Of a DNA stretch of 64,000 nt, positions 455 through 54,713 are shown one piece after another; positions within the stretch are counted from its first letter, which is position 1; every line of letters begins with the position of its first letter. The notes under the pieces were generated by a model. That model was given only the letters and a program-made list of their open reading frames with translations, was not told the DNA's origin and made no database searches. This DNA is from Marsupella aquatica. Lineage: Eukaryota > Plantae > Marchantiophyta. The stretch covers positions 11,803,187 through 11,867,186 of the forward strand of contig OZ316898.1 in NCBI GenBank assembly GCA_973895155.1, in the 5' to 3' direction. The position numbers were made by a program, and so were the translations under genes.

Positions 455-720
455 TATTTCTTGCTGGGTATGCCCCGTTAGTGGGCACAACCCAAGTACC
501 CAACCGTAGTAGATGACCTGTTTATTAAGATTGCTGGGTATGGGTCAAACAACCCTCATTAATGACCAAAACCCAACAATAGGAGGTGGCATTATTATTA
601 TTATTGCTAGGTGTGGGTCAAACGACCCCCATTGATGGCGAAAACCTAGCAGTTGAGCAGTACAAGGCTAATTTTAATATTAATATTATTGCTGGGTATG
701 GGTCCAACAACCCCATTTCA
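455..720. repeat. ~75-85-bp degenerate tandem repeat (attgctgggtatgggtcaaacaacccc)
   Basis: Motif at ~460, 530, 603, 688. Confidence 0.7.
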
Positions 721-939
721 TGGACAACAGCTTGTGCCTCCAGAGCAGATGGTATAAACGATCTCCCTAAAAGCAAGCCACTATTTTAGCTAAACTTTTT
801 GCCAGAAATCATTCAAAATGAGAGTGGCTTTAACAAGAAGTGGGGGGGGGGGGGGGACTCGTGGCTTCTTCTCACCATACCAAACTGGAGCGTCATTATA
901 GAACATACAATGTTCTTGCTATGAACATAGAAAGCATTA

Positions 940-1190
940 CAAGAAGTGTAGGGACTTGTGATTTCACCTTAGCAAACTGGAGGGCCATTTTTTGTTCTAA
1001 AACATAGACTCCAAACCAAAGCACTACCAGATGTCTTTTGAAATGAACTTCACCAGATGCAAATAGCTAGAATGAGGAGCCTTAGTTTGGAAAGGTTTGG
1101 ACCACCTCAAGAGGTGGTTTAAGATAGTAGACAAAACAAGCACTCCACATCAGTAGTTACTTGGGCCCACTACTAGCCATGTAGGATTGG
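940..1190 (+). repeat. Dispersed repeat family member (also ~52960-53185)
   Basis: Shared blocks tttcacct.agcaaa, atagactcca.accaa, gtttggaccacc and actccacatcagt..acttgggcccact. Confidence 0.6.
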
Positions 1191-1804
1191 GGTACACCGT
1201 TCACAGTGAGTTCACCATAAATCTCCTTTGGTGTGGAGGAGAGAAGCACTCATTTTGGCTCAAGCAAACTGCCTGGCTGGGTATTGTACAGACACCCTCA
1301 CCAGAATTTTTCAAGGGGCAAAAAATTGCCAAATTCCACCTCCTTGAAAAGTCTGTTTTCTAATTTTGGCAACACTAAACCAATTTTCCACTTACCCACA
1401 GACTTGGTTGGCCAGAAGGTAAAGGGTACCTTTTAATATAGGGAGTTCTAAGGGCCAGACATTTAAGGAGGAAAATTAGATAATCAATACTCCTAGAATC
1501 TTACCATGTTACCTACAGAATTGAAGAGAAGAACATTGAGTCTCGAAAAGACCTAATGGAACAAAATGTCAAATACAATTTTACAACAAGAAGACATTCA
1601 CATGAATGTTTGCACATGTGATTATCCTAATTCATAGTTCAGAATGCGCCAAAATGACAGCTTGGCCCAATTTACGATTACCACCGTGCAAGCCATGCAG
1701 CTTGACTGGACACAATCACTATGAAATTGAGCAGGGTTCATTGTTCAAAGTCCTATTATCACTATATACCTAGAAGAACTTTCAGAAGAACATTCTGTGA
1801 GGCT

Positions 1805-2172
1805 CTTTAAGAGGGGGTTGATCAGGCAAGAAAAGTTTTGAGGAGGCTGATGAAGTAAAGTTCATTAAGAGGGGGTTGATCAAGCTTTGAAAAGTTTCAA
1901 GGAGACTGATTGGTAAAGTTCATTAAGGGGGATTCGTCAAGCAAGAGAAGTTTCAAGGGGGTTGATGAGGTAAAGTATTTCAGAAGTTTCAAGGGGGCTG
2001 AAGAGACAAAGTATTTCAGGTAAGGGGTCTATTAAGTACATCTCTGGGGTACTCAGGTACTCGATATTTGGGCTAGATCTTGAGTACAGTGAGGTTTACC
2101 CATCATTGAATGATTTCGCTATTTGAGCTAGATCCTTGAGTAAAGTAAGGTTTGCCCACCATTTAATGATTT
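1805..2172. repeat. Two adjacent degenerate tandem arrays (~58 bp x3-4, then ~55 bp x2)
   Basis: taagagggggttgatca..aaagttcat periodicity; atttg(g/a)gctagatc..tgagta..aatgatt twice. Confidence 0.7.
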
Positions 2173-3247
2173 AATGAATTAATCCCACAGGCCTGCAGAT
2201 CGTCCTGTACGCAATCGTTGTTGACCGTTTCAGAGACCATTTATGACAGTGAATTAATGGATTTTGTCCCTCCGTGTTTTGCTGTTTCACCCGCAGGATG
2301 CGCATGTAATTTCGTACGCGTTCCTTCCGACAGGTCAGGAGATCAGACGAAGAATGGAGGCAAGGTCTCCATTGTAAACAGTTGTTTGACAACATCTGGG
2401 TCAGTGTTCTCACCTGGTTATGGATGACTACAAAACGGCATCCAGCCGAGATTCTTACTAATCACGTCTCATCTGAAACCGTGCAGAGAAAAACTGGACT
2501 TCTCACGGAAAGCGCTTGTTTCCGTTGCCTTCTCTGGAAATAACAGCCATCAGATTGCTCACCACTTGGAAAAAATACTTCAAAAACTTGCTCAGAGGTA
2601 ATAATTATTATGAAGTTCGCATTAGTTTCTTAATCAGAACGCAACGTGACTTGGAATTCAATAAATGCCCACGAATGAGCGGAAATTGAATGTTCCCAAT
2701 CAATGAAAGAATATCAGCACATCGCCTTTCTATCCGTTAGGATTTCCAAATATGCCCTCAAAAGATTTTCTAATTACTCGTGGCTGACAGCTTCCACGTC
2801 TCATTCAAAACGGTTTAGTCTGAAAACTGATGTCTGCAGAGGATAGCTTGATCTCAAAGACAATTGCACTTATATCAGCATAGCAGAGTACACACTCAGG
2901 AATAACTTCACGGCAGTGACTTTGGTGCATCCAAGGAGCATGAGGGAGTTCAGGTATCATCCTGGAAGATCAGCTAAACGTACGTGCAGGATTTTGTTAC
3001 GAAGAGAACATGTATAGAAGAATATATTTACAGGAGCACCCCTCGCTTGCACTGGTATGTGCGGGTAACCCAATGACTTGGGTAATAAATCCTGGCTTCC
3101 CAAATTCGAAGAAACAACGCACAACGCACAACGCACAACAAACCATAACAGTTTTTCACTTTATCCGACTCCCTCGTGCACTATAGGAGCGTATCTGCCT
3201 TTAGCACATACTTTCCAGGTCGCAGTATGAATGGCTCTTGCTGAGGT

Positions 3248-6200
3248 TTAGAGTCCGAAGAGTTGTTGTGGAGCCCCTTCGGAGTCTGCGTAGGTCTTTT
3301 TAGGAATGTGAAGAGAACTTTGCCTGCCGTCCATGACATCCTTGATGGAGTGTGCAACCTTCAGAGTGAGCACATCTGAATTGGACTCGACAGCTGCTGT
3401 GAGAAGTCTGATCCAATGGTCTGAATCGAATTGGAAAGACAAGTCAGTAAAACGACAATAGCAGGACAAACAAAAGAAGTAGATTGACATGCGGAACTGA
3501 CCTCTAGGTCTAATCCTATTCATGTCTCGGGATTTGCAATGAACCCTTCATCCTCAACGGAAAGCTTTACTAAAACCCAAATTTTGTTTTCTTTGAGATA
3601 GACTAAGCATACCTTGAGTAGGAACAATGCTTGCTTCCAAGACACCTTTCAAGCACTCCACGCCATACTGCGTACACGTTAGGCTTCATTAGCTATGTTC
3701 AAGTTCAACCAGCAATGGTTACTCTGGCATTTGATGAATGAGATAGGTTCGTATCAGCTTCCCGCATTATGATTGAAAAAATCTTATTACCTTATGAGCT
3801 GTGACAAAAAGATCAATCCCTCGGTTGTGTACAAACGCCGGATCCAATGTTCCAACATAGAGATAATGCACCATGGCTTTCGCCAAATTGTATGACGTAT
3901 CATGAAGTTCCATTCTGTTCGATTCGAGGAGATTCAGCCTGAAAATCTGCAATGGAGGACAAATGTGCGTTCAGAGTGCCAAGTTTTAGCTGACACAAAC
4001 AAACGGCTTCTTGCCCTTGTATCATGGCATGCAATCTAGCTCGTAGTATACTCCTGCACAAACTGCATTACCGTTGAAGGAAGTGCAACAAGATGCGCTG
4101 CTTGTGTCCAATTTTCTCTAAATAATTTCCTACCACGGGGTAGCTGAAGGAAAGGCATTGTACCTTTGAAGCACCTATCACAAGCAACTTTAGTGCAACG
4201 ATATCCTTGCCTTCAGCAACGAACTCAACAAGATCATGTTTGCCGCTCTTGAAGACAGCATCCCAACTTTGTTGAATAGTGTGAGAAACAGCGTTCGTAT
4301 GATGAGCTGGTGGCTTCAGGCCCTTTGCAGCAAAATGCTGAATGGTTGCGTCCGCCAAAACCTTTATCAACGCATCCCAGTGACGGTATTCCCATCCTAT
4401 AGCAGAAAAATGTTAAAGCATAAGTATATACTGGCTGAAAGGCATAAACTTATCATATTCCATACCAGACAAGGAATCAAACGAGTTGCGGTGAAACAGC
4501 CGGGCAATTAATGCTTATGAAATATGATGGTACACCTTTGACATATAGAGATGATTTGAGCTCCAGAGCAATGAGTAGAGGCGTCTTGTGATCGAAGCTG
4601 ATCTTCCTTGTCTCCTGTGCACTTCCATCGTGACGTTTCGGCTCATGACGGACGATGGAAATTTTGTGAGCTGATGGTGGCGGGGCAGCTTTAATGTTAA
4701 TATCAGCTCCATGTTGTAATAAAGTCGTGACAGCCTCAAGATGACGCTGTTCCTCATATTTATAAACCACCAAATGTAATGCTGTAGCTCCCTGGATCAG
4801 CCAGACAGTAAGTGAGCACTCGAGCACCCACATTTCTTAACCCATCGTCTGGCATTCCATCAGAACGTCGCTGGTCACTAGCTAAAGGTCATGGTATGTT
4901 TGTATTACGCAAACAGCAAGTCTATGTCTCCCCCTCTGTTTGTGCCTCATAACCGCATCGGGCAAGTACCCTTGTAATGGTTGTCTCGGAAGTGACATCA
5001 TGATCTATAATTGGGAACACACACATGACCAGCTTTATAGGAGTATTACATTTTCGCCTAACCTGACCCACACCACCACCAAATTCCGCGTTGTCTTTCT
5101 GAGATAAGCTTGCCAAAAATTTAAAAATCCAAGGAACTAAAAAATCCGAGGAACTCATGCTCCTATGTCGATCCCAGTCTCTTGGATTTTTCGGACCTCT
5201 TACTTCAAAGCCAAAAACTGCGCAGTATACGCTGTATACTGCTCTCAAGAATGCAATTCACGAAAAAAAATCCAGGCAAAATATTGTGGAACGTAGTGTC
5301 CTCGCAATCATGTGGATGTTTCAGTAGTGTTGCGTGGCTGACACCCCCGATATTCGTGCTATCACCATATCTAAGTTGCTGTGTGGCCCCATGTTTTCAT
5401 ACAGTCCTAGCAACATCGTAGCAGTTTTTCTAGGTAAACGGCTTGTGGATGATATCTCGAGGTCATTCGGATCTGCAGCCGTAACAACAGCCCATAATGG
5501 TATGTCCAAACGGGGAATTCCACTTCCGGTGTCGAGTCCACACCCTCACTCTGCCATTCCAATATTTCCTGAAGGATACCAACTTTAGGGTGGTTTCATT
5601 CCAGGTGGGCTCTCCCGTTAAATAAAGTTTCATGCGGTCCAAGATCCCATTGCAACTTAGGAAGGTCCCAAATAACATACTCAAGCATGATCAGGCATGC
5701 TTTGTTACTGCACGAGCTTCAATCACAAGCGTTAGTTCCTCCCTTGCCCAGACACTGCAATTAATTCTGTTAGCATGTTGCAAGCATCCACAGCAGTACA
5801 ACCTGTAGACCTCTCGAGTAAAATTACCGATCGGCGGGAATCGAGCCTTTTCTAATCGGGTACCCTATCTAGATCGAGACAGGTCATTACGCAAGCTTTC
5901 TGAAGACTGTGGGCAATCCCCGCATTTCTTTGCCGGATTGCCCCCTGGAAATGAGTTTTAGGCGAGAAAGAACTGGAAGTGCTTGCAGCGAACAGCCACG
6001 GACTGCTCTGCCCTTGTGGAAACGCCAAACCACAGAGACAAGGAACTGAAAGCAGGTGTGAAGACCCTGACCCAACGTCAACAAAGTGACAACCCCCCGA
6101 CCAGAGACTTTGGATTACGGACTCTAGGCCCTATACAACCTGAAGTTGCCTCAGAATCTTTAAATTCTCCTACACGACCCCAACCTCTCAAGATTTCTTT

Positions 6201-6826
6201 CAGTTTAGCCTTGACGTCGAGAGAAGACCCACCCATCAGTAGACGAGCTTCTTCAGAGCATGCAACACTGTGAAGTAAAAAAAATCATCTCCAGAACGAC
6301 AAATCACGGTGGCAGAGTTCCTTCACATTACTCCACAGTAGACCCCACATATGAACACAATTCAACCGCCGTACCCCTGAGGAAATCATGACCAGCACCA
6401 GTTCTCTATGTTCTGGAAACTAAGGAAACCATGACCAAAGCATCACTGGCAAAAATCTCCAGCACACGTCCATGCCCCTCCTTGGCTGTAGTACGAAACT
6501 AGATTAAGGATCTCAAGCCTCGCCCAAATTAAGGGTGCGGTCCCCACTAAACGAACGATCTAGCTAGTACATAGATGTCCTGCCGCAATCTAGAATCCAA
6601 GACAAAGGCTAAGCACCTCAGAGTTGTACGCATTCACATCGACTTTCCGATTCTTCAGCAGGGCATCGATGACCTTCACATTTCCTTCTTGCACGGCTCG
6701 GAAGAATGACGCCTGATTCAAGTTCCCCGCTTGAACGCCAATCTGCGCTCCCGCATCGTCTCCTAGCCCTACGCTCTGCACACTAGCCTCGATCGAATCC
6801 GTCGCTGTAGTTCCTGCTGACGCCAT
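3248..6826 (-). CDS. Ankyrin-repeat + BTB/POZ domain protein (~360 aa), 6 exons: 6826-6617, 4791-4536, 4396-4164, 3946-3791, 3667-3613, 3420-3248
   Basis: GT-AG introns join ORF pieces in frame. The ankyrin consensus runs across the exon1/2 junction (VDVNAYNSE|GATALHLVV..LLQHGADIN; KTPLLIALE). BTB signature: DLVEFVAEGKDIVALKLLV..MVHYLYVGTL..LFVTAHKYGVECLK. Confidence 0.85.
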
Positions 6827-7444
6827 CCCTGCAAGCCAATATCTTATGCCTGCCTGCCTCCCTGCGCCTACCCCCTAGCTGCTTCACCCAATCTCACCAA
6901 ATCCTTCGCTGCTGCTTCCTTCACCCAATCTTGCTCTCTCCAGTCCCCTGTCGATCTGTTATCCCGTGAACTTCAGGCAAATCTCGAGCAATCCGACCCC
7001 AATCTACTCCACACAACTCAGCTGGAAACCCTCACTTCTTCGTTCCTGATTTGTGAACTCAGGTACGAGAGTGGCCCTCAACAGGAAGTTACTCGATTCT
7101 TCTCTCTCAATTATCTTCAGCGCTCTTCGAATTGCGTTTCTGCTCTGCGTGCCTGACGGATGCTCCTCTCGTACCCATCCTCCCTTCTTTGCGATTCTCG
7201 AGATGCGCTTTGTCACGTCAACCTGACAAGTGTGCATGCCATCATCCCTCCCTTTTGGCCGCCATGTGAACAGTCAGCTCTGCCTGAGTGTGCTGTGCAT
7301 AAGTGCGTTCCGTGGTTAAGTGCAAGGAAAATCAGGATTTTTTTCCTAAAAGGAGATGCGATTTTTAATGCAGTTTTCTGGAGCCTAGGACTTACCCCCT
7401 TGTGTTTGTAAGGCCTGTTTTCGCCAAATGGTGTCTGTTGCAAT

Positions 7445-7545
7445 TCAGAGGGCTCACTCAGGCATTTGTAGGGTGAGGTTCAGAGGGCTCAGGAAATTGT
7501 AGGGGCAAGGATCAGAGGGCTCAGGCATTTGTATGGGCGAGGCGG
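7445..7545. repeat. ~32-bp tandem repeat x3 (cagagggctcaggcatttgta)
   Basis: Directly visible. Confidence 0.7.
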
Positions 7546-9426
7546 GTTAGTTCTAGGGTGTTGTAATGGATTCCTTTGCTAGACCCTCTTATGCAACTCA
7601 CCTTGGATCTTTACCAGGCTCTTCACTTTGCTGAGGAGGTAGGGTTTTAAGGTCTTTTGTTCATGGCTGTTTTAGTGGTGCTCTCCTTGCTTGGTTGCTC
7701 TGGCTTTTTTGTTCTTTGGTTTCTTTCCCTTGATTGCGTCTTTTGCATTTGGGATAGTGTTTCCAGGTTAAGTGCCTTTTGTTCTTTTGTAGTTTGATAT
7801 ACAAGTTTTTCTAAGTGCATGTTGACCATCTTTACATGAAGACATGTATAATAGTCAGCTGTGTCTAACCAATCTGCGCATAACTGCATCCCATGTTTAA
7901 GTGCACCAAAAATAGTTATTCCACAAAGAAATAAGCATTTTCATGACCAGATGCAATTTTCAATGCAGTTTTTTCAGGTGCATGTTCACCAAACAGTACA
8001 AGAAATTCTGTACAGGCAGAACTGTCTAAGTGCACTGTGCGTGGCTGCATCCTGTACACTTCAAGTAAGATAGTCCCTCCATGAGGAAATCAGGATTTCT
8101 AAGAGTATATGTGATTTCTAATGCAGTATTTTGAGGTGCATGTTGACTGGGCCTGTCAAAGTTCATGGAGTTATATGGAAGCCATCCAGGCAACAATCTC
8201 TGACATTAGCTGAGTGCTTGAGCAGCTCCTATAACTTGTCATTGAGATTCAAATGGCATCTGTCCCCCAAGAGACCTTTGAAGTCATTGCCCATCTGGAG
8301 TTGATTGCCATTTTGAAGTGAACACTCTCATGCTTGGTGACCAGCCATACTTCAAATTCTAACCAGTAATTACTCTTTACAGAAGCTGTCAAAACTACCC
8401 ACCCCTGCCCAGAAAAGTGGCCGTGCTTAATGCTTTGAGATGCCCTATTATATCTTAAATTTGCACAGTCGCCATGTTGCATGACTAACTGCATTCAACG
8501 CTTAAGTGCAAAGAAAATCATTCTTTAAAAATATATTATTTAGCATTTCTTTGACTATATGCAATTTTTAATTTTTCATTGAAGTGTTGACAGCAATTAA
8601 TTTTGAAAATTTAATTGTAACATATAAAATTTGGATAAAATTTAGATTATTGATACTGACAGTCTGACCTACTATTTTATTTACGTATAACACATTGGCC
8701 AGCCTGGACTATATAGTTTGAAATGCTCACAACGCATGTCTGAATGATTCCGTGGTGTAAAAATAGAACATTAAATAAAATTTAAAAATGGTCGCACCAT
8801 CAGGAGCTCCAAGGCTGGAGGGAGCATTATTTAAGAAAAACCTACAGAGATAAATTGTAAAAAGCCCAGATACATTTGTGCAACCTTAAACATTGAGAGC
8901 TTGACACTGATGCAACCACTTTGTTATGGGAACAAGTCCCTTTATCCAGTGCCTCTCCCTCTATATGCTCAAATTGTCTCCATTTATATGTTTAAAACCC
9001 AGTTCTAGCAGTCCTTCCAGTCTTGGACCTCCCATGAAGCACCGTCATCAAGCTTGATCCCCTCACCTAAACATGGCTTGGCCAACCTTGACACTATCAC
9101 GGATGCTCAAATAAGCTAACTTTGGTGATCCTTTTCACCTCTAGTGATATTTCCGATACAAAGCGGGATACAAAGTCTCACTTATCCTACCAAGGCTGAT
9201 AGTCATGGACTAAATGCTGGCTTAGCAATGGCTTGCACATACATAAGGATCCCCAAGGTAAATACTCCATCAAATAGCAAGAGACAATTTGGCCATTGTC
9301 TTGTCTCAAGTTCAACAATCATTAGAAATATGGTCAACATATAGAAAGTCCAACATTTACCAGCCTTGCCATACATAATGAAAATGAATAATTGGCATCT
9401 ATGCTGATTTGGAGCAACTCTGTTGG

Positions 9427-9604
9427 GTTGTCGTGACATATAGTATCGTAGCCATAGTGTATCGAAAACATATAAGTCACCGGCAAGGCATATGTGCAAG
9501 CTGCTAGCAACCAAAATGCATAGAAAAAGTCCAATCACATTCACAAGTGCCAAGAAAAAGCAAATGAAGTGATATGTACGTAGTGGAGGTGTAAACCTCT
9601 GTAT
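9427..9604 (-). repeat. Terminal repeat block B2 (3' end of element)
   Basis: Direct repeat of 9965-10142; abuts block A2. Confidence 0.95.
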
Positions 9605-9697
9605 ATAAAAGGTGTAAGAGAAACAATTGTACTGAAATCAAATCAAAAACCGGCAGGATGCCAAGATCGGCCGGGAGCATCTAACGAATCATTGTGT
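9605..9697 (-). repeat. Repeat block A2 (~87-93 bp)
   Basis: Direct repeat of 19138-19230; the 3 core differences are CpG->TpG/CpA in this copy. Confidence 0.95.
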
Positions 9698-9964
9698 GAA
9701 TCCCGTGTATGGAACCGACGAGCACTGTCTGAGCTCTGTCAACAGCGATTCAAGAAGAACTGAAAAAACCCACAAAGAAAGACATGCCCTAAGTAAACAA
9801 AGTCCTGGCGTCACACTAACAAGCGCGTTTGCTTCAAGAACGCCTGGCATTTGCTATAAGAACATGTCGCTAACTCAAGTAGTACACTAGCCCTAACTAC
9901 ATACCTAGCGGGCATGCGAGGGACATGCCGATGTGCATAAGAGGCACTGTCCCTCGGCATGACA

Positions 9965-10142
9965 GTTGTCGTGACATATAGTATCGTAGCCATAGTGTAT
10001 CGAAAACATATAAGTCACCAGCAAGGCATATGTGCAAGCTGCTAGCAACCAACATGCATAGAAAAAGTCCAATCACATTCACAAGTGCCAAGAAAAAGCA
10101 AATGAAGTGGTATGTACGTAGTGGAGGTGTAAACCTCTGTAT
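9965..10142 (-). repeat. Terminal repeat block B1 (178 bp), immediately after the PPT
   Basis: Direct repeat of 9427-9604 with 3 mismatches. Confidence 0.95.
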
Positions 10143-10150
10143 CCCCCCCA
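10143..10150 (-). other. Polypurine tract (TGGGGGGG in element sense)
   Basis: G-run ~30 nt after the Pol stop and directly before block B1. Confidence 0.75.
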
Positions 10151-10181
10151 GACCACAGCCAAAAGGAGGGCTGAAGAAAAT

Positions 10182-10340
10182 TCAGGTAGCACGTGGAGCA
10201 CAGGAAGGGCAAAACCATAACCCTTCTGGCACCTGGGTAAGTTCAGGCCGAAGGCAGAAAAGATGGTACCCTCCATTGCAATTGTCACACAGCAGCATCT
10301 GGTCAGCATCATCAATTCGCAAACACACTTTGCAAGGGTA
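10182..10340 (-). CDS. C-terminal PHD finger of integrase
   Basis: CKVC..DDADQMLLCDNCNGGYHLFCLRPELTQVPEGLWFCPSC is a canonical C4HC3 PHD, followed by the stop codon. Confidence 0.93.
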   Translation of the reverse strand, partial: YPCKVCLRIDDADQMLLCDNCNGGYHLFCLRPELTQVPEGLWFCPSCAPRAT

Positions 10341-10399
10341 GTCCACAGGTGGAATCCAAGTAGAAGTCACAATGGTGGGATCCAGGTTAGGCAGATGAC

Positions 10400-11740
10400 A
10401 AGGGGCGCAGTTCTTGGCATTGTCAACAATTATGCGCCCATCTGCCCCTTGTAACTCTAGCACTCCAGACGGTCGAATAGCTTTAACCCTGAGAATAGTA
10501 TGACTAGTAGAGGTGTCCAGGGTGTCGTTAGCTTGCCGCTGCAAGTACACGAAATCTCCCACATCAAACTTCCTGACCTTGGGCTGAAAAGTGCCCCCTC
10601 GTGTGTGTGCATAACGCAGTGTGTCCCTGTGCTGTGCAATGGCCAAATTCTCCATGGCCATGGGCATAACCCTCCTGAATAGGGCAACCCTCTCAGAGAT
10701 CACATCAGACCAAGTCAGAGCTGAATCCAAGTCCACCACCTGAAGCATGTGAGCAGCAATAGCAAAAGGTGGAACTAGGTGACGACCAAACAACAAGAAG
10801 TAGGGAGAAAAGTTAGACAGTGATGCATGTCTGGACATCCTATACCCCATGGCAATGTAGGGTAAGGCCAGGTCCCAATCCTCCTTGTTTTTGGTGAGGC
10901 AGATCTTTCAGAGGCCCTTCTTGCATGTCTGAACCATGCGCTCTGCCAAGCCATCTGCCTGTGGGTGATCTCGTGATGTCCGGCGATGATCAATGAGGGT
11001 CTGATCAAGCAGCTCCTGGAACTCTCCTCTAAACTCTGAGCCCTGGTCAGTGAGACATTCTGCACAAGCTCCAAAGTGGCTGAGAACTTGTTGCAGGAAT
11101 GCCTGGCTGGTGCTACGGGAGGTCTTATCCGGCAATGCCACAAGTTCTATCCACTTGGAGAAATGCTCTATCATGATCATGATGTAGAGATTACCCCAAG
11201 ACGTGAGGGGTAATTCTCCAGCCAAATCACATGACTAGCGATAAAACATGCCCTGAATAGGGAGTGGATGAAGTGTGGGTTGCCGAGATGTGAAAGAAGT
11301 CCTCACCCTATCACACTGTTCACACCGGGCAATAACATCTCGAACCTGGCCATGCATACCTCTCCAATGATAATGAGGGACCAAAAGGCTGTAAGTCCTC
11401 TTAACGCCAAAATGACCAAGCTCATAATGTACCTTACGGATAAGGCCAACCCTCTCATGAATGGGTGGAACCACCACTTCCCTGTCTGGCAAGCAACGCA
11501 CGAGATGATTTCCCTTCCACAAGTAACGCTTGGACCTTTGCTAAATTCGGTCTCTCTGGGTTGCAGTAACATGTATGGGGTACTCCCCATGCTGCAAAAA
11601 TCTCAGAGTGTCGTTGTCCTCCCATATGTCCACCACAGGTTGGTCAACAACGTAGCATGGCAGCAAAGCAAGATAGGTAGATGCATGAAATGTGGGCAGG
11701 ATGGAAACCTGGTCAAAATCCTGTCGTGCATCTGAGGAAT
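10400..11740 (-). pseudogene. DDE integrase with HHCC zinc finger (stops at 11541, 11235, 10908)
   Basis: HYELGHFG...CEQC; catalytic SCDLAG / LTDQGSEF / GLAERMV; FSPYFLLFGR; FDVGDFVYL. Confidence 0.93.
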
Positions 11741-11759
11741 CATCAGAGGCAACAAAGGG

Positions 11760-13150
11760 CTGCGGGACATAGTGTCAGCATTTTGATGTGTCATACCAGG
11801 CCTATGAATTACCTCAAAATCATACTCCTGGAGTATGAGCGCCCAACGAGCAAGCTTGCCAGTAAGCTTGTCGTTGGTCATCAACCACTTCAAGGGCTGG
11901 TGGTCGGTGTAGAGAACAAACTTGGTCCCATAGAGGTAGGGCTTGTAATGTATGACAGCCCACACAACAGCAAGGCATTCACCCTCATAAGAAGAATAAT
12001 GACTCTCTGCCTGATTGTTGCTCCTGGATGCATAGGCAATGACGTACTCTTTACCTTCCTCATCATGCTGGCCCAGAATGGCACCAATCCCAAGGGCACT
12101 CCAATCTGTGTGGAGCACAAAGACCTTGCTGAAATCAGGTCTTCTCAGCACCGAGTATTCTGAGAGCTTCTCCTTCAAAGTGGCAAATGCTGCCTCAGCA
12201 TCTGTACTCCATGTCCAAGTCACATTCTTTTTCAACAAAGCATACAATGGGTGTGCAATGGTGCTGAAATCTTTGATGTAGATCCGGTAGTAATAATTGC
12301 ACAACCCAATAAAACTCCTCAAAGTGTGAACATCGGTAGGAGTGGGCATTTCCAAGATGGATACCACCTTGGCCCAGTGAGCCATGGTTCCATTTGGAAG
12401 AATGCGGTGCCCAAGGTATACTACTGATCTGACAGCAAATTCACACTTCTTGGGGTGTATCTTTAGGTTCACCTTCTTAAGCCTCATGAATAGCTCCTCG
12501 AGGTCAAGTAGATGCTGGTCAAATCCTTTGCTGTGGACCAACACATCATCAATGTAGCATTTCAGAAACTCAGCACCTTGAAGAACCTGGTCCATGACTC
12601 TTTGAAAGAATATGGGCGCATTCTTCAAGCCAAATGGCATCACCAACCACTCCCATAGTTGGTTACTACCATGGAAAGCTGTTTTCTTGCGGTCCTTTGC
12701 AAGCAGCAAAATCTGGTTAAAGCCTTGCCTTAGATCCACAAGAGTGAAGATGTCTGAGTCTCCAATGCTGTCAAATAGCTCCTCTAGCCGTGGCATGGGA
12801 TACCTGTCCTGGGGTGTAACCAGATTTAGTGGCCTGTAGTCCCCACACATGTGCTTCTCTGTCCACAATCCACTGTAATCCTTCTTTGCTGGCATCACTA
12901 TAGCTGCTGCAAAATCTGATGTAGATGGCTGAATAATACCAGCTTCATATAACTCTTGGCACCTCTCATCCACCAGCTGCCACTCATGCTTACTCAAACG
13001 ATGTCTCCGCCTGAAGATAGGTATTTCATCAGCCAACTCAATGGAGAACTGCATGGTCTTGCACTTACCCAAGTCCTTCATAGAGAAAGCAAACACGTTC
13101 TCATGCTTGAGGAGCAAATTCAGCAGCTGGTCCTTCTGTCTTTTACTCAG
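11760..13150 (-). pseudogene. pol: Gypsy-type reverse transcriptase + RNase H
   Basis: GIIQPSTS, MCGDYRPLN, DLRQGFNQI, KTAF, VMPFGLKNAP, YIDDVLV, KKCEF, YLGH. RNase H: LHTDWSALGIGAILGQ, YASR, ECLAVVWAV, TDHQPL, LARWAL, NADTMSR. Frameshift near 11750 before integrase. Confidence 0.95.
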
Positions 13151-13514
13151 GTGGTTGCCCATGATGAACGTGTAGTTGGCAACACTAGGAATAGGACCTG
13201 ATGTACTCGTGCTTGAAGAGCCAGAAGTGCTAGCCTCTCCACTGTCCAAGCTGCTAGCATGCTGCTGATAAGGTGATGAGGCCTCTCCAAGGCCTGTTGT
13301 ATCTGTTGCTCTGGTCTGATCCACACCATGAAACTCAGAAATAATATCAGCCACGTTACAAGGGACCTCCTCCCCCCCAACACTTGGACTGAAGCGGTGA
13401 GTGTTGAATAGAGGTAAGTGCACTTGGTCTGGATGCCATGTAGTAGCACCATGGAGTGGTAGGGCTGGAACTCCTGATGCTGGATGAATGTACATCTGAA
13501 AAAGGATGCAAGTG

Positions 13515-14460
13515 ACCAGAAGCCAAGTGAGAGCATTAAGATCCATTACCCTGCCAAGTAAAGCATTCCTGGCCAGCTTGGTGATTTTGGTGTGGCATGT
13601 AGTACCGGGTTGGAAGCCCATAGCCCATTCTCTCTCCTCAGGACTAGGTTCATCCCATGTACCGGTAGAATGTCGGTAAACCAGGCCAGGACCATCACCC
13701 TGAAAAGCATGTGCACCTGGAAAGGACACAAATATAGGCCAAGCAGCACGGGGCTGTCCAATGGTATTGGCTGGATACCAAGGTGCTGGCTCTTGCCGTG
13801 TAACTGGTTGGCAAGAACTGTCAAGATCCAAAATCTGGTCCACTGTGAAGTTAGTGTCCCTGGATGTGTGGTGAAGAGCTAACTCCAACAAGGAAGGTGG
13901 TGCAAGGTTAGTCCAAAAGTTACGAAGACGATGTGCATAAGAACCACAGTGCACTGCATCAATGAGAAGGGGTGGTCCCAAGTAGTGCTGGACCACACTG
14001 AAATCCTCTTTGACCTGTGGTCGTTGGTCAAACTGAGATTGAGTATTCTCAATGATATAACCAATAGCAGGATAAAGGGATTGAGCCCAGGTGAGAATCT
14101 GAACCAATGCTGTGAAAAGGCCAGAACGAGAATCATGCAGTCCAGCACCGTGACCAGCAGCTGAAAACCCTTGGCATTCCCAACCAGCTATGATCAAATC
14201 AAGGGAGCCAAGAAGGGTTAAGTGCTGGTGCTAGACAAGCTGGATATCTGGAGGAAAGAAAGAAAATGCAGACTTCCATGCACTGTGTGGAAACTGTTGA
14301 GGAAATCGCTCTAAAAATTCCAGCAGACAGGATTCAGCCACTTGCCTTGCACCTGGATCAATATCCACATAGATGTACTGCTTCACCACCATGTCAGACT
14401 GTAGGAGAGCTTCCAGGCCTGTAGAAATGCCACCAAAAAGCTCAAGCAATGTAAGGCCAT
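13515..14460 (-). pseudogene. DNA (cytosine-5) methyltransferase domain, DNMT3-like, in frame within Pol (one TAG at 14231)
   Basis: Motif I LLELFGGIST, II YVDID, IV DLIIAGWECQGFSAAG..GLHDSRSGLF, VI YIIENT, VII LLIDA, VIII AHRLRNFWTNL, IX PEEREWAMGF..GTT, X RNALLGRVMD, all in linear order. Confidence 0.9.
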
Positions 14461-14689
14461 CCGGAGCAGGAGTCCATGTAACTGGTGCGCTCAAGATTGG
14501 GGCTATTGGCTGTCCATTGTGTTGCCCAAGGTCTTCAAACTTGCGCAATGCAGCCACCAAAGGTCCATGGGCTGCTTGGAGCCGTTGTACCACCTCTGGT
14601 TGATGATCCACGTTGCTGGAAAGTGCTGCTATACGTGTAGCAACATGTGCAGCAGCCACCTCATCGTCATCCTCCTCAATCCAATCTTA

Positions 14690-15200
14690 CAATGGGTGGT
14701 TGACATAGGTAGCTGTGTGCACTGCTTTCAACACACAGTGGTGAGCCATAGGTGTATGGGCACCATGCAAATCAAGTGGAATGTAGCCCAAGTGTGAGCC
14801 ATCAGTATGCCAATCAACTCTGTAGTATGCATGCTCATGCCAGTTGTCAATGGTAAAACCTGGTGGGGACAAAGCCTCCTGGCCAATGAGCACATCATAC
14901 ATAGTGGCATTGGTAACCAAACATCTAACTGGGAAATGCAGTTCCTAATCTGTACCTCCATTAAAAGTAGTGAGTAAAGTAGAATTCTCACCCAGCACAT
15001 CCTCCACAGTGCCACTAGCAATCCGAATGTGCCACTTGGATTGCTGTAAATGATCAGTCAACAGTCCCATCTTCTTGGCAAACTGAATGCCCAATATCAC
15101 TGGTTGAGCACCTATGTCTAGCATGACCACCTGAGGAGTGTGACCCTCCAACTTGACCACTGAATTCCTGTTGTCAACAATGGCAATGGTGGTGGAAATT
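14690..15200 (-). pseudogene. Retropepsin aspartic protease domain of Pol (stop at 14945)
   Basis: VMLDIGAQPVILG (DTG->DIG), IRIASG flap, YDVLIGQEAL C-terminal motif; same frame as MTase/RT. Confidence 0.8.
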
Positions 15201-16073
15201 GAAGTCCTGTCACTAGGCACCACTCTCGGCAAATGATGAGGTACCTTGTGAAGGGAGTTAGTGTCCACGGTCTTTCCACTCAACAACATAGCCAGGAAAG
15301 ATGGAGCAGCATGATCAGAATCAAGTGTAGCTCTGGTCACACAATCAGCAACAATCGGTATTGGGGCAGCCAAACCAGTGGAAACATGTAAAGGAGAAGA
15401 AGAAGGTCCAGTATGTACATGAGATTGGACCTCCAAAACCGGTGTCACAGGGGCTGATGAAGAATGCAGTGAACCCTCTAGCACCCTGAGGACAGCTCTA
15501 GCATCCAGCTGTAAATCATGGCAACTAAAAAGTGGAGTTGTAAGAATCCTTTGTGCCATACCGGAGGTGAAATGCTCAAGAAGCTCAGGAGAAACAACTC
15601 CCTGTGAAATGTCAACAGCACGTGGTGGTGGAATGGATGTAGCTGCAGCTCCCTCCCCCCTCGCCAACAAGGTGCACTCTTCAGCAAGTGTGAGTGGCTG
15701 AAAAGATTGGGGCATGACAGCCCGAGCTCCCCTGGCTCTAGTCATAGGATCGGTAGCAAGACCATCAGCCTGTACAATGCGGCGTGTGGGAGCAATACGG
15801 GAGGCAGCATTGGCCTGCTGGTAAGCAAAATAGGAAGGGCAGAATGAATCTGAAAATTCTGCTGTAAGGCCAGGCGGTGTACCAGAGGACAACACACACT
15901 CACCCATATGAGCATCAAATGGCAAGCCATAGAAAGAGTGGGGTAGAGGTGCTGAACTGTCAGTGGTGCCTGGGCCAGGGATGGGTGGCACGTGACCAGC
16001 CGGTTGAGAAGGACCAGCAGAGGAAGTTGACTTGCCTTTGATGTTGGCAAGTTGGGCACGTAGGGACTCAACC

Positions 16074-17282
16074 TCATGAGTCAGAGATTGGAGTTGAGTT
16101 GTCTGTGCGTTGTGAGCCTCCTTTCTGAGCTGGTTGCTTCTGTTGCTGCTTGGGCGGTTTGTTGGCACTGGGTGCTTTGCCACTGGAAGGAGGAGCAATT
16201 GATGCAGTAGGAGCCCTCCTAGCTAGTGGGGGAGTGGAAGTAGGAGCAGGAGGAGGGGCCTGCTATCGTAGCTGCTTCCTCTCTGGGAATTTGGCAAAAC
16301 AAACTGCCTCCAAGTGGCCCACTTTCCCGCAAAAATCACAAGACAGGTCCTTAGCAACAATATCACATTCATTAGCCTTGTGATTAGGATTGCCACAGTA
16401 GTTGCAAGATGGCAGCATGAAAGCAGCATGTGCTGGTTTGGTCTTGGAAGCATACTGTGGCACACGGGAAGGGGTGGTCATTGTAGGGGCAGCAGCCTGG
16501 TACCTGGATCGTGGTGGACGCGCAATATTGGCCTCATAATGTGCATGTGCCAACTCAAGTTTCTCAGCAGTGTCATAGACATTGAGCAAGGTGTAGCTGT
16601 CTCCAAACTCTGAGAATACTTGCTGCAACACTTGCGAATGGAGAGCTGGTGTGCCCTCCAATGCGCGAAGATAGCGATGAGCAGCTTCCAGGTCAGTGAT
16701 GCTCTGGGTGTCCTCCTTCAGCTTGAGAATCCGGCAATACATCATCTTCAATGTTTCATCGCGTTGCCTCACAAAGGTGGCCAACTGCATGATTTTGTCA
16801 ACACTCTTGATTGGGAATTCCAATTCAAGAACCTGAAAAAACTCAGCCACTGGATCAACAAAGGCAGGAGAATCAATGGTGGGAGAAATGCCTGATGTAG
16901 CCTGTGCCAAGACAATGGGAGTAACTGGCGCCGTGGTAGGAACTGGAGTAGGAGGGGAAGTGGCAGGAGCAGCAGCATGGGCTGCAATGGCATTCTGTAA
17001 GGCCAATTGTGATGCTGCCGCAATTGCACTGGCATAGGCAGGGTTAGGCAATTGTGTGACAGCAAGCAGCCGTTGAGAGTGCTGCTCATACACATCCAAA
17101 GCCTCATGGTGCACATACCTGGCTAGCTGCTTAAATGCAAAAGCATTTGTGAAATTGCTGCCGTACTTCAACTCCAATTTGTAAATGACAGTGTAGAAAG
17201 TGGATTTGAACTCACGTAAAGAGACAGTGCCTGGCCGCCCGCTGAAGCGCTCAATGCGGCCAGATGAGTGGCTGGCGTCCAT
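16074..17282 (-). pseudogene. gag: Gag-like ORF with two zinc knuckles; premature TAG at 16263; true start uncertain
   Basis: IERFSGRPG capsid-like start and RQRDETLKMM major-homology-like motif. CCHC knuckles CNYCGNPNHKANEC and CDFCGKVGHLEAVC. The frame reads on past the TAG to TGA at 16074. Confidence 0.8.
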
Positions 17283-18139
17283 GCTGTATGTCGGTGAAGC
17301 AGGAACAACCACGGATGCAGAAGGGGTAAATGGCAATGAAGGGATAGCAGGCTTTGGAGCAGTGGTGAAGCGACCGCCAAATTGAGCAGAAGGATTGCGT
17401 GGTGTACGTGGGTGCTACTGCTGTCTGCTGGCATCGTCAAAATTGCCGAGACTCCAATGAAATTGGCACCAATGGTCGTGGATCACTCCGCAAGTGGTAC
17501 CTGGGTGTCGGTGGCGATGTGCTGCTACCTCTTGGCTCGTTGGCTGACATGCTGCATGCTCACCTGGGTGCCAATGGGAAAGAAACTGATAAGAAAAAGA
17601 AATGGCAGCCCCAAGGCTAGGAAATAAAACCCACAAAGGAAACAAACGGTGCGAGGCAGAAATGTGTCGAATGTGTAAACACACAGAAAAACCATCGGCA
17701 AAGAAAAGACCCTTAAAAAACTCCAATTGTACTGGTGTTGTGCTTGCTGGATTGACTGTCTGATGAATATGCCGGGCCCTCAGCTTTATGCAGATGACAC
17801 GTGGCGGCAGCAAAGAAATCCGGAAAAATGGGCCCTTAAAAACGTAAACCGGGGCCCCCCTTAAGTGTATACATCGGCCCTTTCAAATGTATAAACATGG
17901 GGCCTGGTTAAGTGTATACATCGGCCCCCATGTGGACCCGGGAAGTAGCAAGCAAGACGGAAAAGAGACCGGGCGCGCGTCGGCAGCAAAATGGTCGTAG
18001 TGGGGACCGGCCGCGGTGCCCTATGTACATGACCTCATGGGAGTCGAAAGACCCTCGCGCAGCGGACAAGCGACCACGGAGGAACGGGGGAAAAGACGGG
18101 ACCCAAGGCGAGGCGAGAGAAAAGAAAAACGACCTTAAT

Positions 18140-18680
18140 TGCTCCAGCCCTGCATAGGGCTTCGTGCCATACGCCCTCCTTATTAGTCCTTATGAGCTCC
18201 CGAAAAGGGAGGCTACGAGCTCCCCCTCAATCCACTCCTTAAATGCTGTCGTGCCTGGCAGAGTGGCAGAAGGACTCCAGGGAAAGGAGTCGAATGTAAC
18301 TCCCCCCCCTTTAATTCTCCATAGGGCCTCGTGCCCTCCTAGCTTGCGCTTCAACTCCCCCCTCCTTGCTGTCGCTTATGCTTGGTTGCCTCTCCCCCTG
18401 CGTTAATGCTACTTAGGGCCTCGTGCCCTCTCCTGGCATCTCGCTCCCCCTTTAATGCTGCTGAAAGTGGGCTCTGTGCCCCGCAGGACGACTCCCGAGA
18501 GAGGGAGTGGAATGTACTCCCTGCACTCGTGCTTTGGCTCCCCCTCCCCCTTTAATGCAGCATAGGGCTTCGCGCCCCCCCTTTCGCTTCCCCCTTCCCT
18601 TGTTAATTCTTCAGAGGCCTCTGTGCCTTCTCCTCTCGGCTCCCGGCTTGTACTCGCTGCCTCGAAAGAGTCATTAAAAC
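18140..18680. repeat. Degenerate tandem repeats in the element 5' leader
   Basis: Recurring catagggc(t/c)tcg(t/c)gcc and ccccctttaat motifs at ~18152, 18320, 18414, 18560. Confidence 0.65.
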
Positions 18681-19124
18681 GTAAGGCGAAAGGTGAAGGG
18701 AAAGAAAATGAGGGGAAGAAACGGGCGTGCGGCCCTATGCACTCGGGAAGTATTCGCGAGGTGGTCGAGGCAGCGAGTAGGTGGTCGCGCTGCGGCCGAG
18801 GCAGGATGGCAGCCGTGGCCGGCAAAAGAAACACCAAAAAAAATGGCCCGAAAAAGGTCGTGGCAGGTGCTGAAGCAGCAGTTGGCAGCGGCTGGAAATG
18901 AAAAACCGTGAAAGCAAAGCGCAAAGGAAAAGAGGGAGGGGGGGGCCTGTTTGACTTAAGTGTATATACTTAAGTGTATACACAAAAGCCATAACTTCCA
19001 CCCCATCGCTCAACATTTTTCCATAGAAATTGCACCGGCATCAGCGGAAAAGCGTCAACTGTCTCGAGCAATTGAGAAGCACAACGTCTCCGATCTTCTT
19101 CCCTTCACCGCTAACCCGGCGACA

Positions 19125-19139
19125 CAGTTCTTCTTGAAT
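19125..19139 (-). other. Putative self-priming primer-binding site
   Basis: Lies directly 3' of A1 with a 2-nt overlap; perfect 15-nt reverse complement of 9748-9762 (attcaagaagaactg); no TGG tRNA-type start. Confidence 0.65.
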
Positions 19140-19227
19140 AAAAGGCGTAAGAGAAACAATTGTACTGAAATCGAATCGAAAACCGGCAGGATGCCAAGAT
19201 CGGCCGGGAGCATCTAACGAATCACTA
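19138..19227 (-). repeat. Repeat block A1 (5' end of element)
   Basis: ataaaaggcgtaagagaaacaattgtactg...catctaacgaatca matches 9605-9691. Confidence 0.95.
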
Positions 19228-19658
19228 TGTTGAGGACGATTAGGTTCGCGATGCAGAATTCGTTAAAATGCAGCTGGTTCCGTATCGGCGAGTTGTACAC
19301 TTGGCATCGACAAAGACTACGTCGCCACATGAAACGGCAACAGCTGACTCTACTGCTGTCATACATCCCCAACTGCGGATCCGCGAATGACGGCAAAGGG
19401 GTTGAAGATGGTTCTCGAGAAGTTTCGTCGAACTTGTCCTCTTCTCCACCCATTATGAACGATTCTTTGTAGACTGTAGTTGTATTGATCATTTCAAATA
19501 GTTCATTTTACAACAAGCCCTGGAGGGATTCCACTACGGAAGAGAACTCCCGAGTCCCGACCTTACGACGCGATCCGATCCGATCCGATTCGGACGACCG
19601 TAAGGATATTCATCCTTCCAAAGTTTCAAACAATTCTGTCCTTCTCTTCCGTGTCCGG

Positions 19659-20032
19659 AGCTCATATGCGGACGGGATTTCTACGAAGCTCGCTTTCCTT
19701 TGATAGACAGCTCAATAATACTTTACAGTAAGTAAGTAAGTAACAGAAGACGCTCTATGGGAAGAAGCTCGCATGCGGACGGGCTTTCGAAGAAGCTCAC
19801 GTTCCTCCGATAGACAGCTCAATACTTTACAGTAAGTAGGAGAAGACTCTCTATCGGAAGAAGTTCGAATGCGGACGGGCTTTCTGCGAAGCTCACTTTT
19901 CGCCGATCGACAGCTCAAATACTTTGGCAGTAAGTTAAGGGAAGACGCTCTAAGAGAAGAAGCTCGATCGCAGAGGGGGCTGTCTGGGAAGCTCACTTTT
20001 CGCTGAGAGACAGCTCAAACCTGTACAGTAAA
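19659..20032. repeat. ~97-107-bp tandem repeat, ~3.7 copies
   Basis: atgcggacggg..gaagctc..gacagctcaa..cagtaagt at 19666, 19773, 19869 and degenerate ~19967. Confidence 0.85.
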
Positions 20033-23610: not shown

Positions 23611-24694
23611 ATCTTTTTCTTGTATCAACATGTTTTGTGCAATGAAGAGACATCAGACTAGTACAACGAGAACCAGCAAATCAAAAGTAAATCTGACTGA
23701 AAACTCTATGTTTGAAGAACTCTAACCCTCAAAAAAATACGCAACATAAGTGAAGTGGATGCTCGAATGGACCAGATTTTTTTTGACCTAGCAGCGTGGA
23801 AGATCCAAGGGTGTTAGCATAATTAGAACAAAACGATGCCATTTGAGTTAGAAATAACCTTTGAGAATTGCCATCGTCCACCAAGCTGGTTGTTACATCT
23901 GGAGGTCCATCTGTTGTCTAATACATCGACAGAAAAGTCCATTTTGAAACACATAAGATAATTAGTGGTGTAGAGCACGTTCATAATCTGGTCCGTTACC
24001 AGGGGGAGGATTGCTCCACTGTAGTCGAACTTGTAGTCGGTGGCTCATAATTTCAGCACAGAAGATGCAACTCGTTGGAGAAAGGGAAGGAGCCACTTCT
24101 CCAGTAGGAGTACTGTCGTACAACAATCGAGTCAAATCGCAAGATTAAAAGTGCAAGACGGGTGCTGTTGCGGTCAGGAAATATATATTTTTTCCTTTTG
24201 TAGCTTTGACTCCTTTAGTTTGTTCGAAAAGAAACGATAAAGAAACGAGCAAGACGCTCCCAGCACTTTGGCGATGGCGGCAATGATTTTTAGTCGTTCT
24301 TTTTCCTTGTTTGGCGGGACGGGAGGACGAGGGAAGGCGAAAACGCGATACCACCGTTTTGCGGTGGAGAGGAAGACAAGTGACTCACGTTTTGGGGCAA
24401 TTCGTGACGTGCTGTCGGGGATGTAGGTTTGCGCTTTTGCAGCATCCTATGGCTTGGTTTGGATGTTGGTCTATCCGGGCATCTTACAGTTGAACTTACT
24501 TTCGATCGTTAGTAAAGAGTGCTGTACAGTAATCCGAGGTTTGATCAGCAGTAAGTTACAGTACAGAAGGGTCTAGTACTGTGCGCATGTCGAGCTAATT
24601 AACCCGGGTTAAGTTCCGTTACCGGGGGAGGCATGATGCACTGTACTGTAGTCTAGTCGGTCGCTCTTTTATTACAGTGGCGAAGATGCGACGC

Positions 24695-25510
24695 AGGGGA
24701 GGGAGGGAGGGAGTGAGGGAGCGAGGGAGGGAACTAGTGTACAGTGGCGGTCAGTCAGACGAATACGGAGGCAGAATGCAGAGCGAGACGGAGCTCCGAG
24801 CTCGTTGGCGATGGCGGCAGAGGTGTTTGTTGGCGGTCTAGCGGAGTGTAGTAGTGAATGGCTTTCCTACACTTTGCAGTAATGACAATACGAGAGTGTG
24901 ACAAGAGAGACGGAGGGGAGGGGAAGGGACGCAGGGTCTTGTTGTGTGGAGAGACTGGATGAGAGATAGGGAGAAAGACGGAGGGAGGGAGGGTCAGGGT
25001 GGCGTAATAATGATGACAGTAGGGAGTGCCTGACTGGCTTGATTGACTTGGCCTTTGCCTGCATCTGTGTGACTGTGTGTGCCTGTGTGCTGTGCTTGGG
25101 GTCTGTGCAGCTGTGGTTTTTGTTGTTGGAGTGGTGCTGCAGTATGGTGCGGTGGTATGGTGTCTCGTAGTGTGGAGATATTGCTCGAAAGCTCTGCTGG
25201 TCGCAGATCTGGGACGAGAGAAGCGGAGAGGAGAGGAGAGGAGAGAAGACAGAAGGAGGGAGGCCCCTGCTCGGGACGTGTGTGGAAATTTTGTTTGTTC
25301 GGAGAACAGTAGCAGTAGTGTAGGTCGGTCGGACGGGCCAGCGAACGGCCGAAAGGAAGGTGTGGAGGTGTTGGAGGCACTGAAAGGAAAGGGAAGGAAA
25401 GGAAAAGAAAGGAAAGGAAAGGGACAGAAGGAAAAAGTCCTGCGGACTGGCTGGCCGGGCAGAAGGGGCGGGCCGGAGCGGAGCAGGGTGGTGGTGGTGG
25501 TGGTGGTCTG
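24695..25510 (+). promoter_or_regulatory. Probable promoter / long 5' UTR of the NDR kinase with (GGGA)n, (GAGAG)n, (GGAAA)n, (GGT)n microsatellites
   Basis: CpG-retaining, purine-rich simple repeats upstream of ATG 26136. Confidence 0.5.
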
Positions 25511-26135
25511 TATTGCGAAAGGTGGTGAAGGTTTAGGAGGGTGTCGCAAAATGAGCTGGGAGTGTGGTGGGACATGATGTGCCTCGTGAGGTTTAAGAGG
25601 TAGTGACCTGAAGGGCGGCACTTGTTTCTCCTCCTGCTACTTTGTCAATGTTGCATACACTCTTGCTCTGCTCTGCTCGTCTGGTCGCGTCTGGACTGGT
25701 CTGATCTGTTCTGGTCTAATCTGTGCATGATTGTACTCTTGTTTCGATGTTCCCATCTGCACCTGGCTTGGCTTGTATGTGCGTGCGTGCGTGCTTTCTT
25801 GGACGTAGAGTGTGAGCTGCTGCATGGTGTTCATTGAACGACGATGATAGGTGATGGTTCACTGCAATTAGCAGAAGACTGTCTTCTGTTGTTGCTGTCT
25901 ACGTGTAATTGGAGATGCATGAGAGAGCGAAGGTGCTGCGGAACAAGGTTTCTAGAGGGGTAGAGGGAGGGAGGTAGGGAGAGGGAGAGGGTGTTTGGAA
26001 ATGCCAGTTCGGCCGCATGTACCAGACCTGATGCAAAGATCAATTAGGCAGGGGAGAGATCATCAAGGCAGCGTGTTGATGAGGCGGAATAATATATTAC
26101 AGTAGGGATTATTATTGGCAGAGAACGATCAAGAG

Positions 26136-31917
<5,782 letters not shown>

Positions 31918-54092: not shown

Positions 54093-54713
54093 CATCTTAA
54101 GTTAACATTGACCCAACATTGAGGCATGAAAGTTCATTTCTTATTCCCCTTGTAGATTATTCCCCATGTTGTTGCAGACCCATCGCTATACCCCCTCAGT
54201 CCAAGAAGGGACCTTAAAAACATGACCATGAATAGTTGCGGGTAGCACCCCAGGGTCCTCATTTCTTTTCTTCTGACCCATCACATGCGAAGAAGTTTAC
54301 GGTTTTTTTAGTGGGTTCAATGAAATACTTTTAAATTTTTGTTGAAGAACATTAGGGTTATTTTAATCCAATTATGAGAATTAAAAGAATCATAGGGTTT
54401 TTAAAAATCATATTTTAAATATTCTTGGAATATTCCATTAAATTAGGGGTAAAAGAATTTCTTAAAAAAACTTCATTGACTTAAGTTTTAGGGTGTTTAC
54501 CCAAAACTTTGTGCGTGATATGGGACCCCTTGGATTGAGGCCCCCGAGGGTAGCACTATCATCTTAAGTTAACATTGACCCAACATTGAGGCATGAAAGT
54601 TCATTTCTTGTTCCCCTTTTAACTTAATCCCCATGTTGTTGCAGACCCATCGCTATACCCCCTCAGTCCAAGAAGGGACCTTAAAAAAATGATCATGAAT
54701 GGTTGCGGGTAGC
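54093..54713. repeat. ~154-bp direct repeats (54093-54246, 54560-54713) flanking an AT-rich ~310-bp insert
   Basis: catcttaagttaacattgacccaacattgagg...gttgcgggtagca twice; the insert has imperfect inverted ends. Confidence 0.8.

Follow-up and report, generated by a model that had tools for sequence, protein, structure and literature searches.

Gypsy-DNMT3 elements (KnitGypsy-Dnmt3) have been described from Klebsormidium nitens only, a charophyte freshwater alga (de Mendoza 2018, Nat Commun 9:1341; PMC5890265). The DNMT3 domain of the K. nitens element has a Ka/Ks below 0.2, and the element combines the repeat structure of DIRS elements with the domain composition of Gypsy elements (Fig. 4c legend, PMC5890265). 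The activity assays in that paper were restricted to dinoflagellate enzymes; the SymbioDIRS-Dnmt3 enzyme methylated CG in yeast, and the acquisitions of DNMT3 by Gypsy and by DIRS elements were treated as independent (PMC5890265). In later literature the Gypsy-DNMT3 of the 2018 paper is cited as the streptophyte case (a 2026 preprint), and retrotransposon-embedded DNMT3 is mentioned in passing, citing the 2018 work (PMC12344493, 2025). Using a full-text literature search we found just two works in which Gypsy-DNMT3 is discussed, the 2018 paper and the 2026 preprint, and no work that puts this kind of element in land plants.

The window, that is the whole stretch of 64,000 nucleotides analysed here, very probably contains a degraded copy of a Gypsy-DNMT3 retrotransposon of the KnitGypsy-Dnmt3 kind in the genome of a leafy liverwort. 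A single retroelement spans approximately positions 19230 to 9427 on the minus strand and carries, in this order, gag, protease, C5-methyltransferase, reverse transcriptase (RT), RNase H, integrase and a PHD finger, the coding part extending from approximately 17414 to 10185 (Table 1). The supposition that the host is an embryophyte was borne out by the neighbouring CYP78A gene: its large exon shares 79% identity with Calypogeia fissa and 52-53% with Plagiochasma and Marchantia, identifying the host as a leafy liverwort that is a relative of C. fissa and distinct from it. Elsewhere in the window, the region 24001-26000 has a strong local GC skew (0.38 at 52% GC) and includes an ORF without Pfam match (24755-25621), and a direct repeat of 155 nt (95% identical) is found at 54093-54247 and 54560-54714, the two units being 467 nt apart.

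Table 1. Features of the retroelement, in element orientation, and of the neighbouring genes in the window.
Feature	Position	Strand	Evidence
Terminal repeat A1, 5' end of the element	19138-19230	-	95-96.5% identity to 9605-9697
Long leader (~1.7 kb) without convincing ORF, short G-rich motifs many times over	17415-19137	-	No Pfam-bearing ORF
gag with CCHC knuckle, frame different from pol in the window copy	16266-17414	-	zf-CCHC 18.6 bits, under cut-off
pol segment 1, protease core 15157-14996, terminates at stop 14945-14947	14948-16222	-	Asp_protease_2 and gag-asp_proteas, E 0.0033, under cut-off; frame map
pol segment 2, C-terminal protease part to linker, terminates at stop 14687-14689	14690-14944	-	Frame map
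DNMT3-type C5 cytosine methyltransferase domain, cut by stop 14231-14233	13490-14524	-	tblastn to P0128; PF00145 25.8 bits; invariant residues; fold and profile
Ser-rich linker between methyltransferase and RT, stop-free	12845-13489	-	Continuous ORF 14230-11606
Reverse transcriptase	12401-12844	-	RVT_1, E 2.6e-28
RNase H	11822-12136	-	RT_RNaseH, E 3e-38
Integrase, shifted frame, three stops	10185-11774	-	Integrase_H2C2 9e-15, rve 9e-13, PHD 2e-12; frame map
Integrase, zinc domain	11465-11298	-	Pfam
Integrase, rve core	11204-10962	-	Pfam
Integrase, C-terminal PHD finger	10334-10200	-	Pfam
Internal repeat B1	9965-10142	-	98.3% identity to 9427-9604
Spacer between B1 and A2, 267 nt	9698-9964	-	Unique in self-comparison
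A2 (9605-9697) with B2 (9427-9604) immediately after it, 3' terminus	9427-9697	-	Self-comparison
Protein-kinase fragment	29147-29560	+	
Expansin exon	43937-44515	+	DPBB_1
Two-exon CYP78A cytochrome P450	49710-51744	-	

The set of Gypsy Pol domains is present, comprising a weak protease match (E 0.003), RT, RNase H and a DDE integrase in the order PR-RT-RH-IN, with the methyltransferase inserted between protease and RT. Four ORFs that the first-pass annotation had joined do belong to one minus-strand frame (16222-14948, 14944-14690, 14686-14234 and 14230-11606), with exactly one stop codon between neighbours. The methyltransferase ORF is free of introns and in frame with protease and RT, and the reading from methyltransferase to RT is stop-free in the window and in the relatives L001 and L006, with no programmed leaky stop at this junction. 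Among the relatives found, L006 is nearest to the window, with 77% identity over 822 aa and segments collinear with the window at 66-80% identity. Its positions 482-7630 form a gag-to-PHD ORF of 2382 codons interrupted by a single stop; this stop, shortly ahead of motif IX within the methyltransferase, looks like damage. Residues 1-336 of this single polyprotein align collinearly with the gag of the window (69% identity), and residues 1857-2381 with the window integrase (80% identity). Since the near-intact L006 holds everything from gag to PHD in one ORF collinear with the window, a single gag-pol ORF is the design of the family.

The ends of the element were determined by self-comparison of the window, in which no LTR pair was detected and only short split repeats were found. 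Their layout in element orientation is A1...B1-spacer-A2-B2, with A repeats of 93 nt and B repeats of 178 nt. The relative L003 shares the A1...B1-A2-B2 layout with an A repeat of 291 nt and a B repeat of approximately 140-180 nt. Neither a target-site duplication nor TG...CA was found at the inferred element ends. Thus, of the initial description as a Gypsy-type retrotransposon, the Gypsy Pol domains and the DNMT3-like enzyme between protease and RT stand, whereas the ends are DIRS-like split direct repeats and the element is therefore not a standard Ty3/Gypsy element. Just beyond the 5' end, at 19628-19918, there are about three tandem units of approximately 100 nt each that are 64-85% alike.

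The window copy is dead, as it has six in-frame stops and two frame changes. Three of the stops are located in the pol frame (14945-47, 14687-89 and 14231-33) and three in the integrase frame (11541-43, 11235-37 and 10908-10); the stop at the end of gag is at 16263-65, and the frame changes are near 16126-16266 and 11753-11762. Contigs of four public runs were aligned to positions 11603-16198 in order to compare the window with other copies. At the stops 14233 and 14687/14689 every other copy has other letters, at 11752 nearly all covering contigs differ from the window by one letter, and at 16122 about half of them do. Because the other copies have differing letters at these sites, several of the defects are private to the window copy. 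Transitions account for three quarters of all differences between the window and these relatives. Judged from its residues, the methyltransferase domain of the window looks recently functional except for the stop at 14231-14233.

For homology searches of the methyltransferase domain the two pieces on either side of this stop were used separately and unrepaired, and in scripts the broken domain was given an X at the stop. The Pfam model PF00145 matched the piece 14230-13382 at 25.8 bits (cut-off 22), and the N-terminal piece had no Pfam match; outside the surroundings of motif IV the domain has diverged beyond the reach of this model. The C-terminal piece retrieved 217 homologues (best E 3e-131, 69% identity), so the methyltransferase match is far beyond chance. 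The interval 13515-14460, to which the enzyme had originally been assigned, does correspond to the methyltransferase fold: motif I lies at approximately 14458, the catalytic Cys at 14176-14174, the Glu of the ENV motif at 14050-14048 and the Gly of motif X at 13555-13553. The C5-methyltransferase motifs I, II, IV, VI, VIII, IX and X are visible in unpermuted order and collinear with DNMT3A.

The analysis of the fold was performed using P0128, a naturally intact relative of 353 residues, to which the window domain has approximately 67.5-68% identity over 343-345 aa (tblastn and alignment, respectively), and for placement relative to named enzymes solved structures were ranked by their profile and fold matches. 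A phmmer search of the PDB using P0128 as query listed DNMT3A first (2.6e-8), then DNMT3C, DNMT3B, tobacco DRM (5e-3) and M.HhaI (1e-2). A profile of 34 diverse family members matched DNMT3A at 3.8e-24, DNMT3B and DNMT3C at approximately 1e-21, DRM at 9e-13 (tobacco) to 6e-9 and HhaI at 2e-9, and DNMT1 was absent from the matches of this profile. On DNMT3A the family profile aligned in three collinear blocks (motifs I-II, IV-VIII and IX-X), whereas on DRM motifs I-IV alone matched, in the C-terminal part of this permuted protein, in agreement with the earlier statement that the window enzyme has the unpermuted order of DNMT3 and not that of DRM. The AlphaFold model of P0128 (pLDDT 93.5, pTM 0.92) was compared with the PDB using Foldseek, and all 50 of the 50 best matches were catalytic domains of DNMT3A, DNMT3B or DNMT3C (E approximately 1e-17, TM 0.78-0.84 on the target). 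The ESM Atlas returned generic C5-methylase clusters only. HMM, profile and fold all point to DNMT3. No Pfam match to PWWP or ADD was detected in any segment of the element; a PHD finger is present on the integrase instead.

Of the 11 residues that are invariant in the family alignment the window domain retains 10, among them catalytic Cys, ENV Glu and RxR, and of the 26 near-invariant ones it retains 25. Catalytic Cys and ENV Glu, as well as the first Arg of RxR, occur in every one of the 136 polyproteins of known domain order and the second Arg occurs in 135 of them, and near-invariance in both clades described below extends to the motif I glycines and the acidic motif II residue. Motif IV is P-C in C5 methyltransferases almost universally. 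It is E-C in the window and in 100 of the 136 relatives, and P-C in 30 of them. Because all other catalytic positions are conserved, the Glu looks like a tolerated variant, with catalysis not assured.

The distribution of the domain was determined by an exhaustive search using P0128 as query, which identified 2021 representative clusters at E <1e-3 and 703 at E <1e-10, many of them polyproteins of 1000-3400 residues. The close family of the window includes proteins named from Sphagnum, and in the public runs of two related organisms 4779 and 2690 contigs belong to the family at >=85% identity. None of the RNA runs searched contained the element. The relatives L001, L003, L005 and L006 share the order methyltransferase, RT, rve and PHD. 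On L005, positions 3196-16272 contain an intact polyprotein of 2358 residues with the domain order of the window and, after it, another gene, which is at least 2300 residues long; the contig may represent two elements in tandem.

Selection was estimated among four relatives from outside the genome of the window. The dN/dS of the methyltransferase was 0.19-0.36 (L001-L004), and for the pair L001 and L003 the methyltransferase, RT and linker had values of 0.22, 0.24 and 0.34, respectively. Between the relatives and the window dS was saturated and dN was 0.23-0.27. The methyltransferase is thus under purifying selection as strong as that on RT, and the neutral evolution that was looked for was not what these values indicated.

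The positions of domains were located in 150 long polyproteins. In 116 of them RNase H is followed by the methyltransferase and then by the integrase (RT-RH-MT-IN-PHD; represented by P0169, P0174, P0176 and 113 others), whereas in 20, including the relatives of the window, it precedes RT (PR-MT-RT-RH-IN; represented by P0178, P0336 and the window). The two orders split at one branch in the methyltransferase tree (SH-aLRT 99) and in the tree of RT and RNase H (100), the label changing once in each; these were quick trees without outgroup, in which one relocation and two acquisitions are not separable. As the split falls on a single branch in both trees, enzyme and backbone have descended together in two old lineages, the methyltransferase being, by its phylogeny, vertically inherited. 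The clade of the window includes proteins named from Closterium (Zygnematophyceae) and the other clade includes Monoraphidium (a chlorophyte). Within the clade of the window, P0327-P0333 and P0171 (approximately 1330-1775 aa) form a sub-clade; these proteins are long, and the methyltransferase is their only recognised domain.

As to function, the enzyme would be made together with Pol and would travel with the replication complex, where it would methylate cytosines on newly made cDNA or on the new insertion. Such a copy would carry its methylation into chromatin from the start, thereby either passing as host DNA or restraining its own activity, and the PHD finger of the integrase would pick the chromatin site. 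Methylation of cDNA or of the new insertion was also proposed for DIRS-Dnmt3 (PMC5890265). We hold this proposal tentatively as a whole, with the chance that an enzyme accompanying Pol in the replication complex methylates the cDNA or the insertion lying somewhat short of even.

A role in DNA methylation presupposes that the domain is not, as it might be, a module that is selected without writing 5mC on DNA, either a non-catalytic SAM- or DNA-binding module that tethers or oligomerises like DNMT3L or an enzyme acting on RNA or an RNA-DNA hybrid. The motif IV Glu of the window and of most relatives, at a position where Pro is canonical, is the main reason for keeping this reading, and the SymbioLINE DNMT was inactive on DNA in yeast, with RNA proposed as its substrate (PMC5890265). 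Near-invariance of the catalytic residues (Cys, ENV Glu, RxR, the motif I glycines and the acidic motif II residue) would however be unexpected for a dead scaffold, DNMT3L having lost these residues, and thirty relatives still have P-C, so that E-C looks like a variant that is tolerated; we therefore consider a domain that does not write 5mC on DNA quite unlikely. An active enzyme could also serve mainly self-limitation or the benefit of the host, by methylating copies of the element, or DNA next to them, and thereby keeping transposition low and sparing the host, rather than by protecting or disguising the cDNA. Self-limitation is among the options proposed in PMC5890265, and the high share of transitions among the differences between window and relatives is as expected for methylated repeats. 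The thousands of contigs in related hosts are nevertheless a poor fit to a tightly self-limited family, and a mainly restraining role is unlikely, if less so than an enzyme that leaves DNA unmethylated.

The domain might, finally, be a fragment of a host DNMT3 gene, by one-off capture or by assembly chimera, beside an ordinary Gypsy element, for which the general rarity of methyltransferases in Gypsy Pol is the sole point. Against it, the intronless domain is in frame with protease and RT, the layout recurs in the relatives L001, L003, L005 and L006 and in 20 distant polyproteins, the trees of methyltransferase and RT are congruent and selection is purifying. This explanation is refuted and retains practically no probability, and the domain is an inherited part of the element carried by other copies and by distant relatives.

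Cytosine methylation is the main route by which plants silence transposons. A transposon with its own de novo methyltransferase would reverse the usual roles in silencing. The window copy, being dead, contributes little by itself, and it is the high copy number in liverworts, along with the family proteins from Sphagnum, that makes the role of the enzyme testable, since such plants are accessible to methylome analysis, transformation and genetics. The 703 clusters at E <1e-10 and the two stable architectures represent a large and old group, as opposed to the single-species picture in the literature. It could even be that leafy liverworts and peat mosses host very abundant, recently active retroelements whose own working de novo DNMT3 writes a sizeable share of de novo methylation, and that the two sister lineages go back to one early acquisition in green plants, older than the split of chlorophytes and streptophytes; in this full extent the scenario appears rather improbable.

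Compared with the catalytic domains of host DNMT3A, DNMT3B and DNMT3C (PDB 6KDA, 5YX2 and 8TCI), which were the best sequence, profile and fold matches, the family has collinear motifs I-X and shares the G-R of motif X, ENV and RxR. It differs from them in that the window enzyme is without PWWP and ADD and resides in a retroelement polyprotein, in E-C instead of P-C in motif IV, in a region between motifs VIII and IX of approximately 90 residues, and in an identity of only approximately 20% in structure-based alignments. The DRM enzymes of plants (PDB 4ONJ and 7L4C) are likewise DNMT3-related and de novo, but they are circularly permuted and further from the family profile (E 9e-13 to 6e-9 as compared to 4e-24 for DNMT3A). 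Chromoviruses, which are Ty3/Gypsy elements with a chromodomain in the integrase, similarly have a chromatin reader at the C-terminus of the integrase, presumably for the choice of the insertion site; in the window element the reader is a PHD finger, a DNA-modifying enzyme is added and LTRs are missing. SymbioDIRS-Dnmt3 of dinoflagellates (PMC5890265) also has a DNMT3-type domain within the Pol of a retroelement, on a DIRS backbone with a tyrosine recombinase, unlike the DDE integrase (rve) and PHD finger of the window element.

The closest described system is KnitGypsy-Dnmt3, with which the window element shares an intronless, unpermuted DNMT3-type domain in the Pol ORF, Gypsy domains and DIRS-like repeats in place of LTRs. 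Purifying selection is common to both, with a Ka/Ks <0.2 in the alga and a dN/dS of 0.19-0.36 among the relatives of the window. The tie is drawn from the shared architecture, the repeat structure and the published description, the nearest named algal relatives being those from Closterium; none of the searches returned a K. nitens sequence. Unlike KnitGypsy-Dnmt3, the window element has a land plant, a leafy liverwort, as host, and its family is very abundant in related hosts. The kind of element itself is therefore known, and what is new here are the land-plant hosts and the two old sister lineages that differ in the position of the enzyme.
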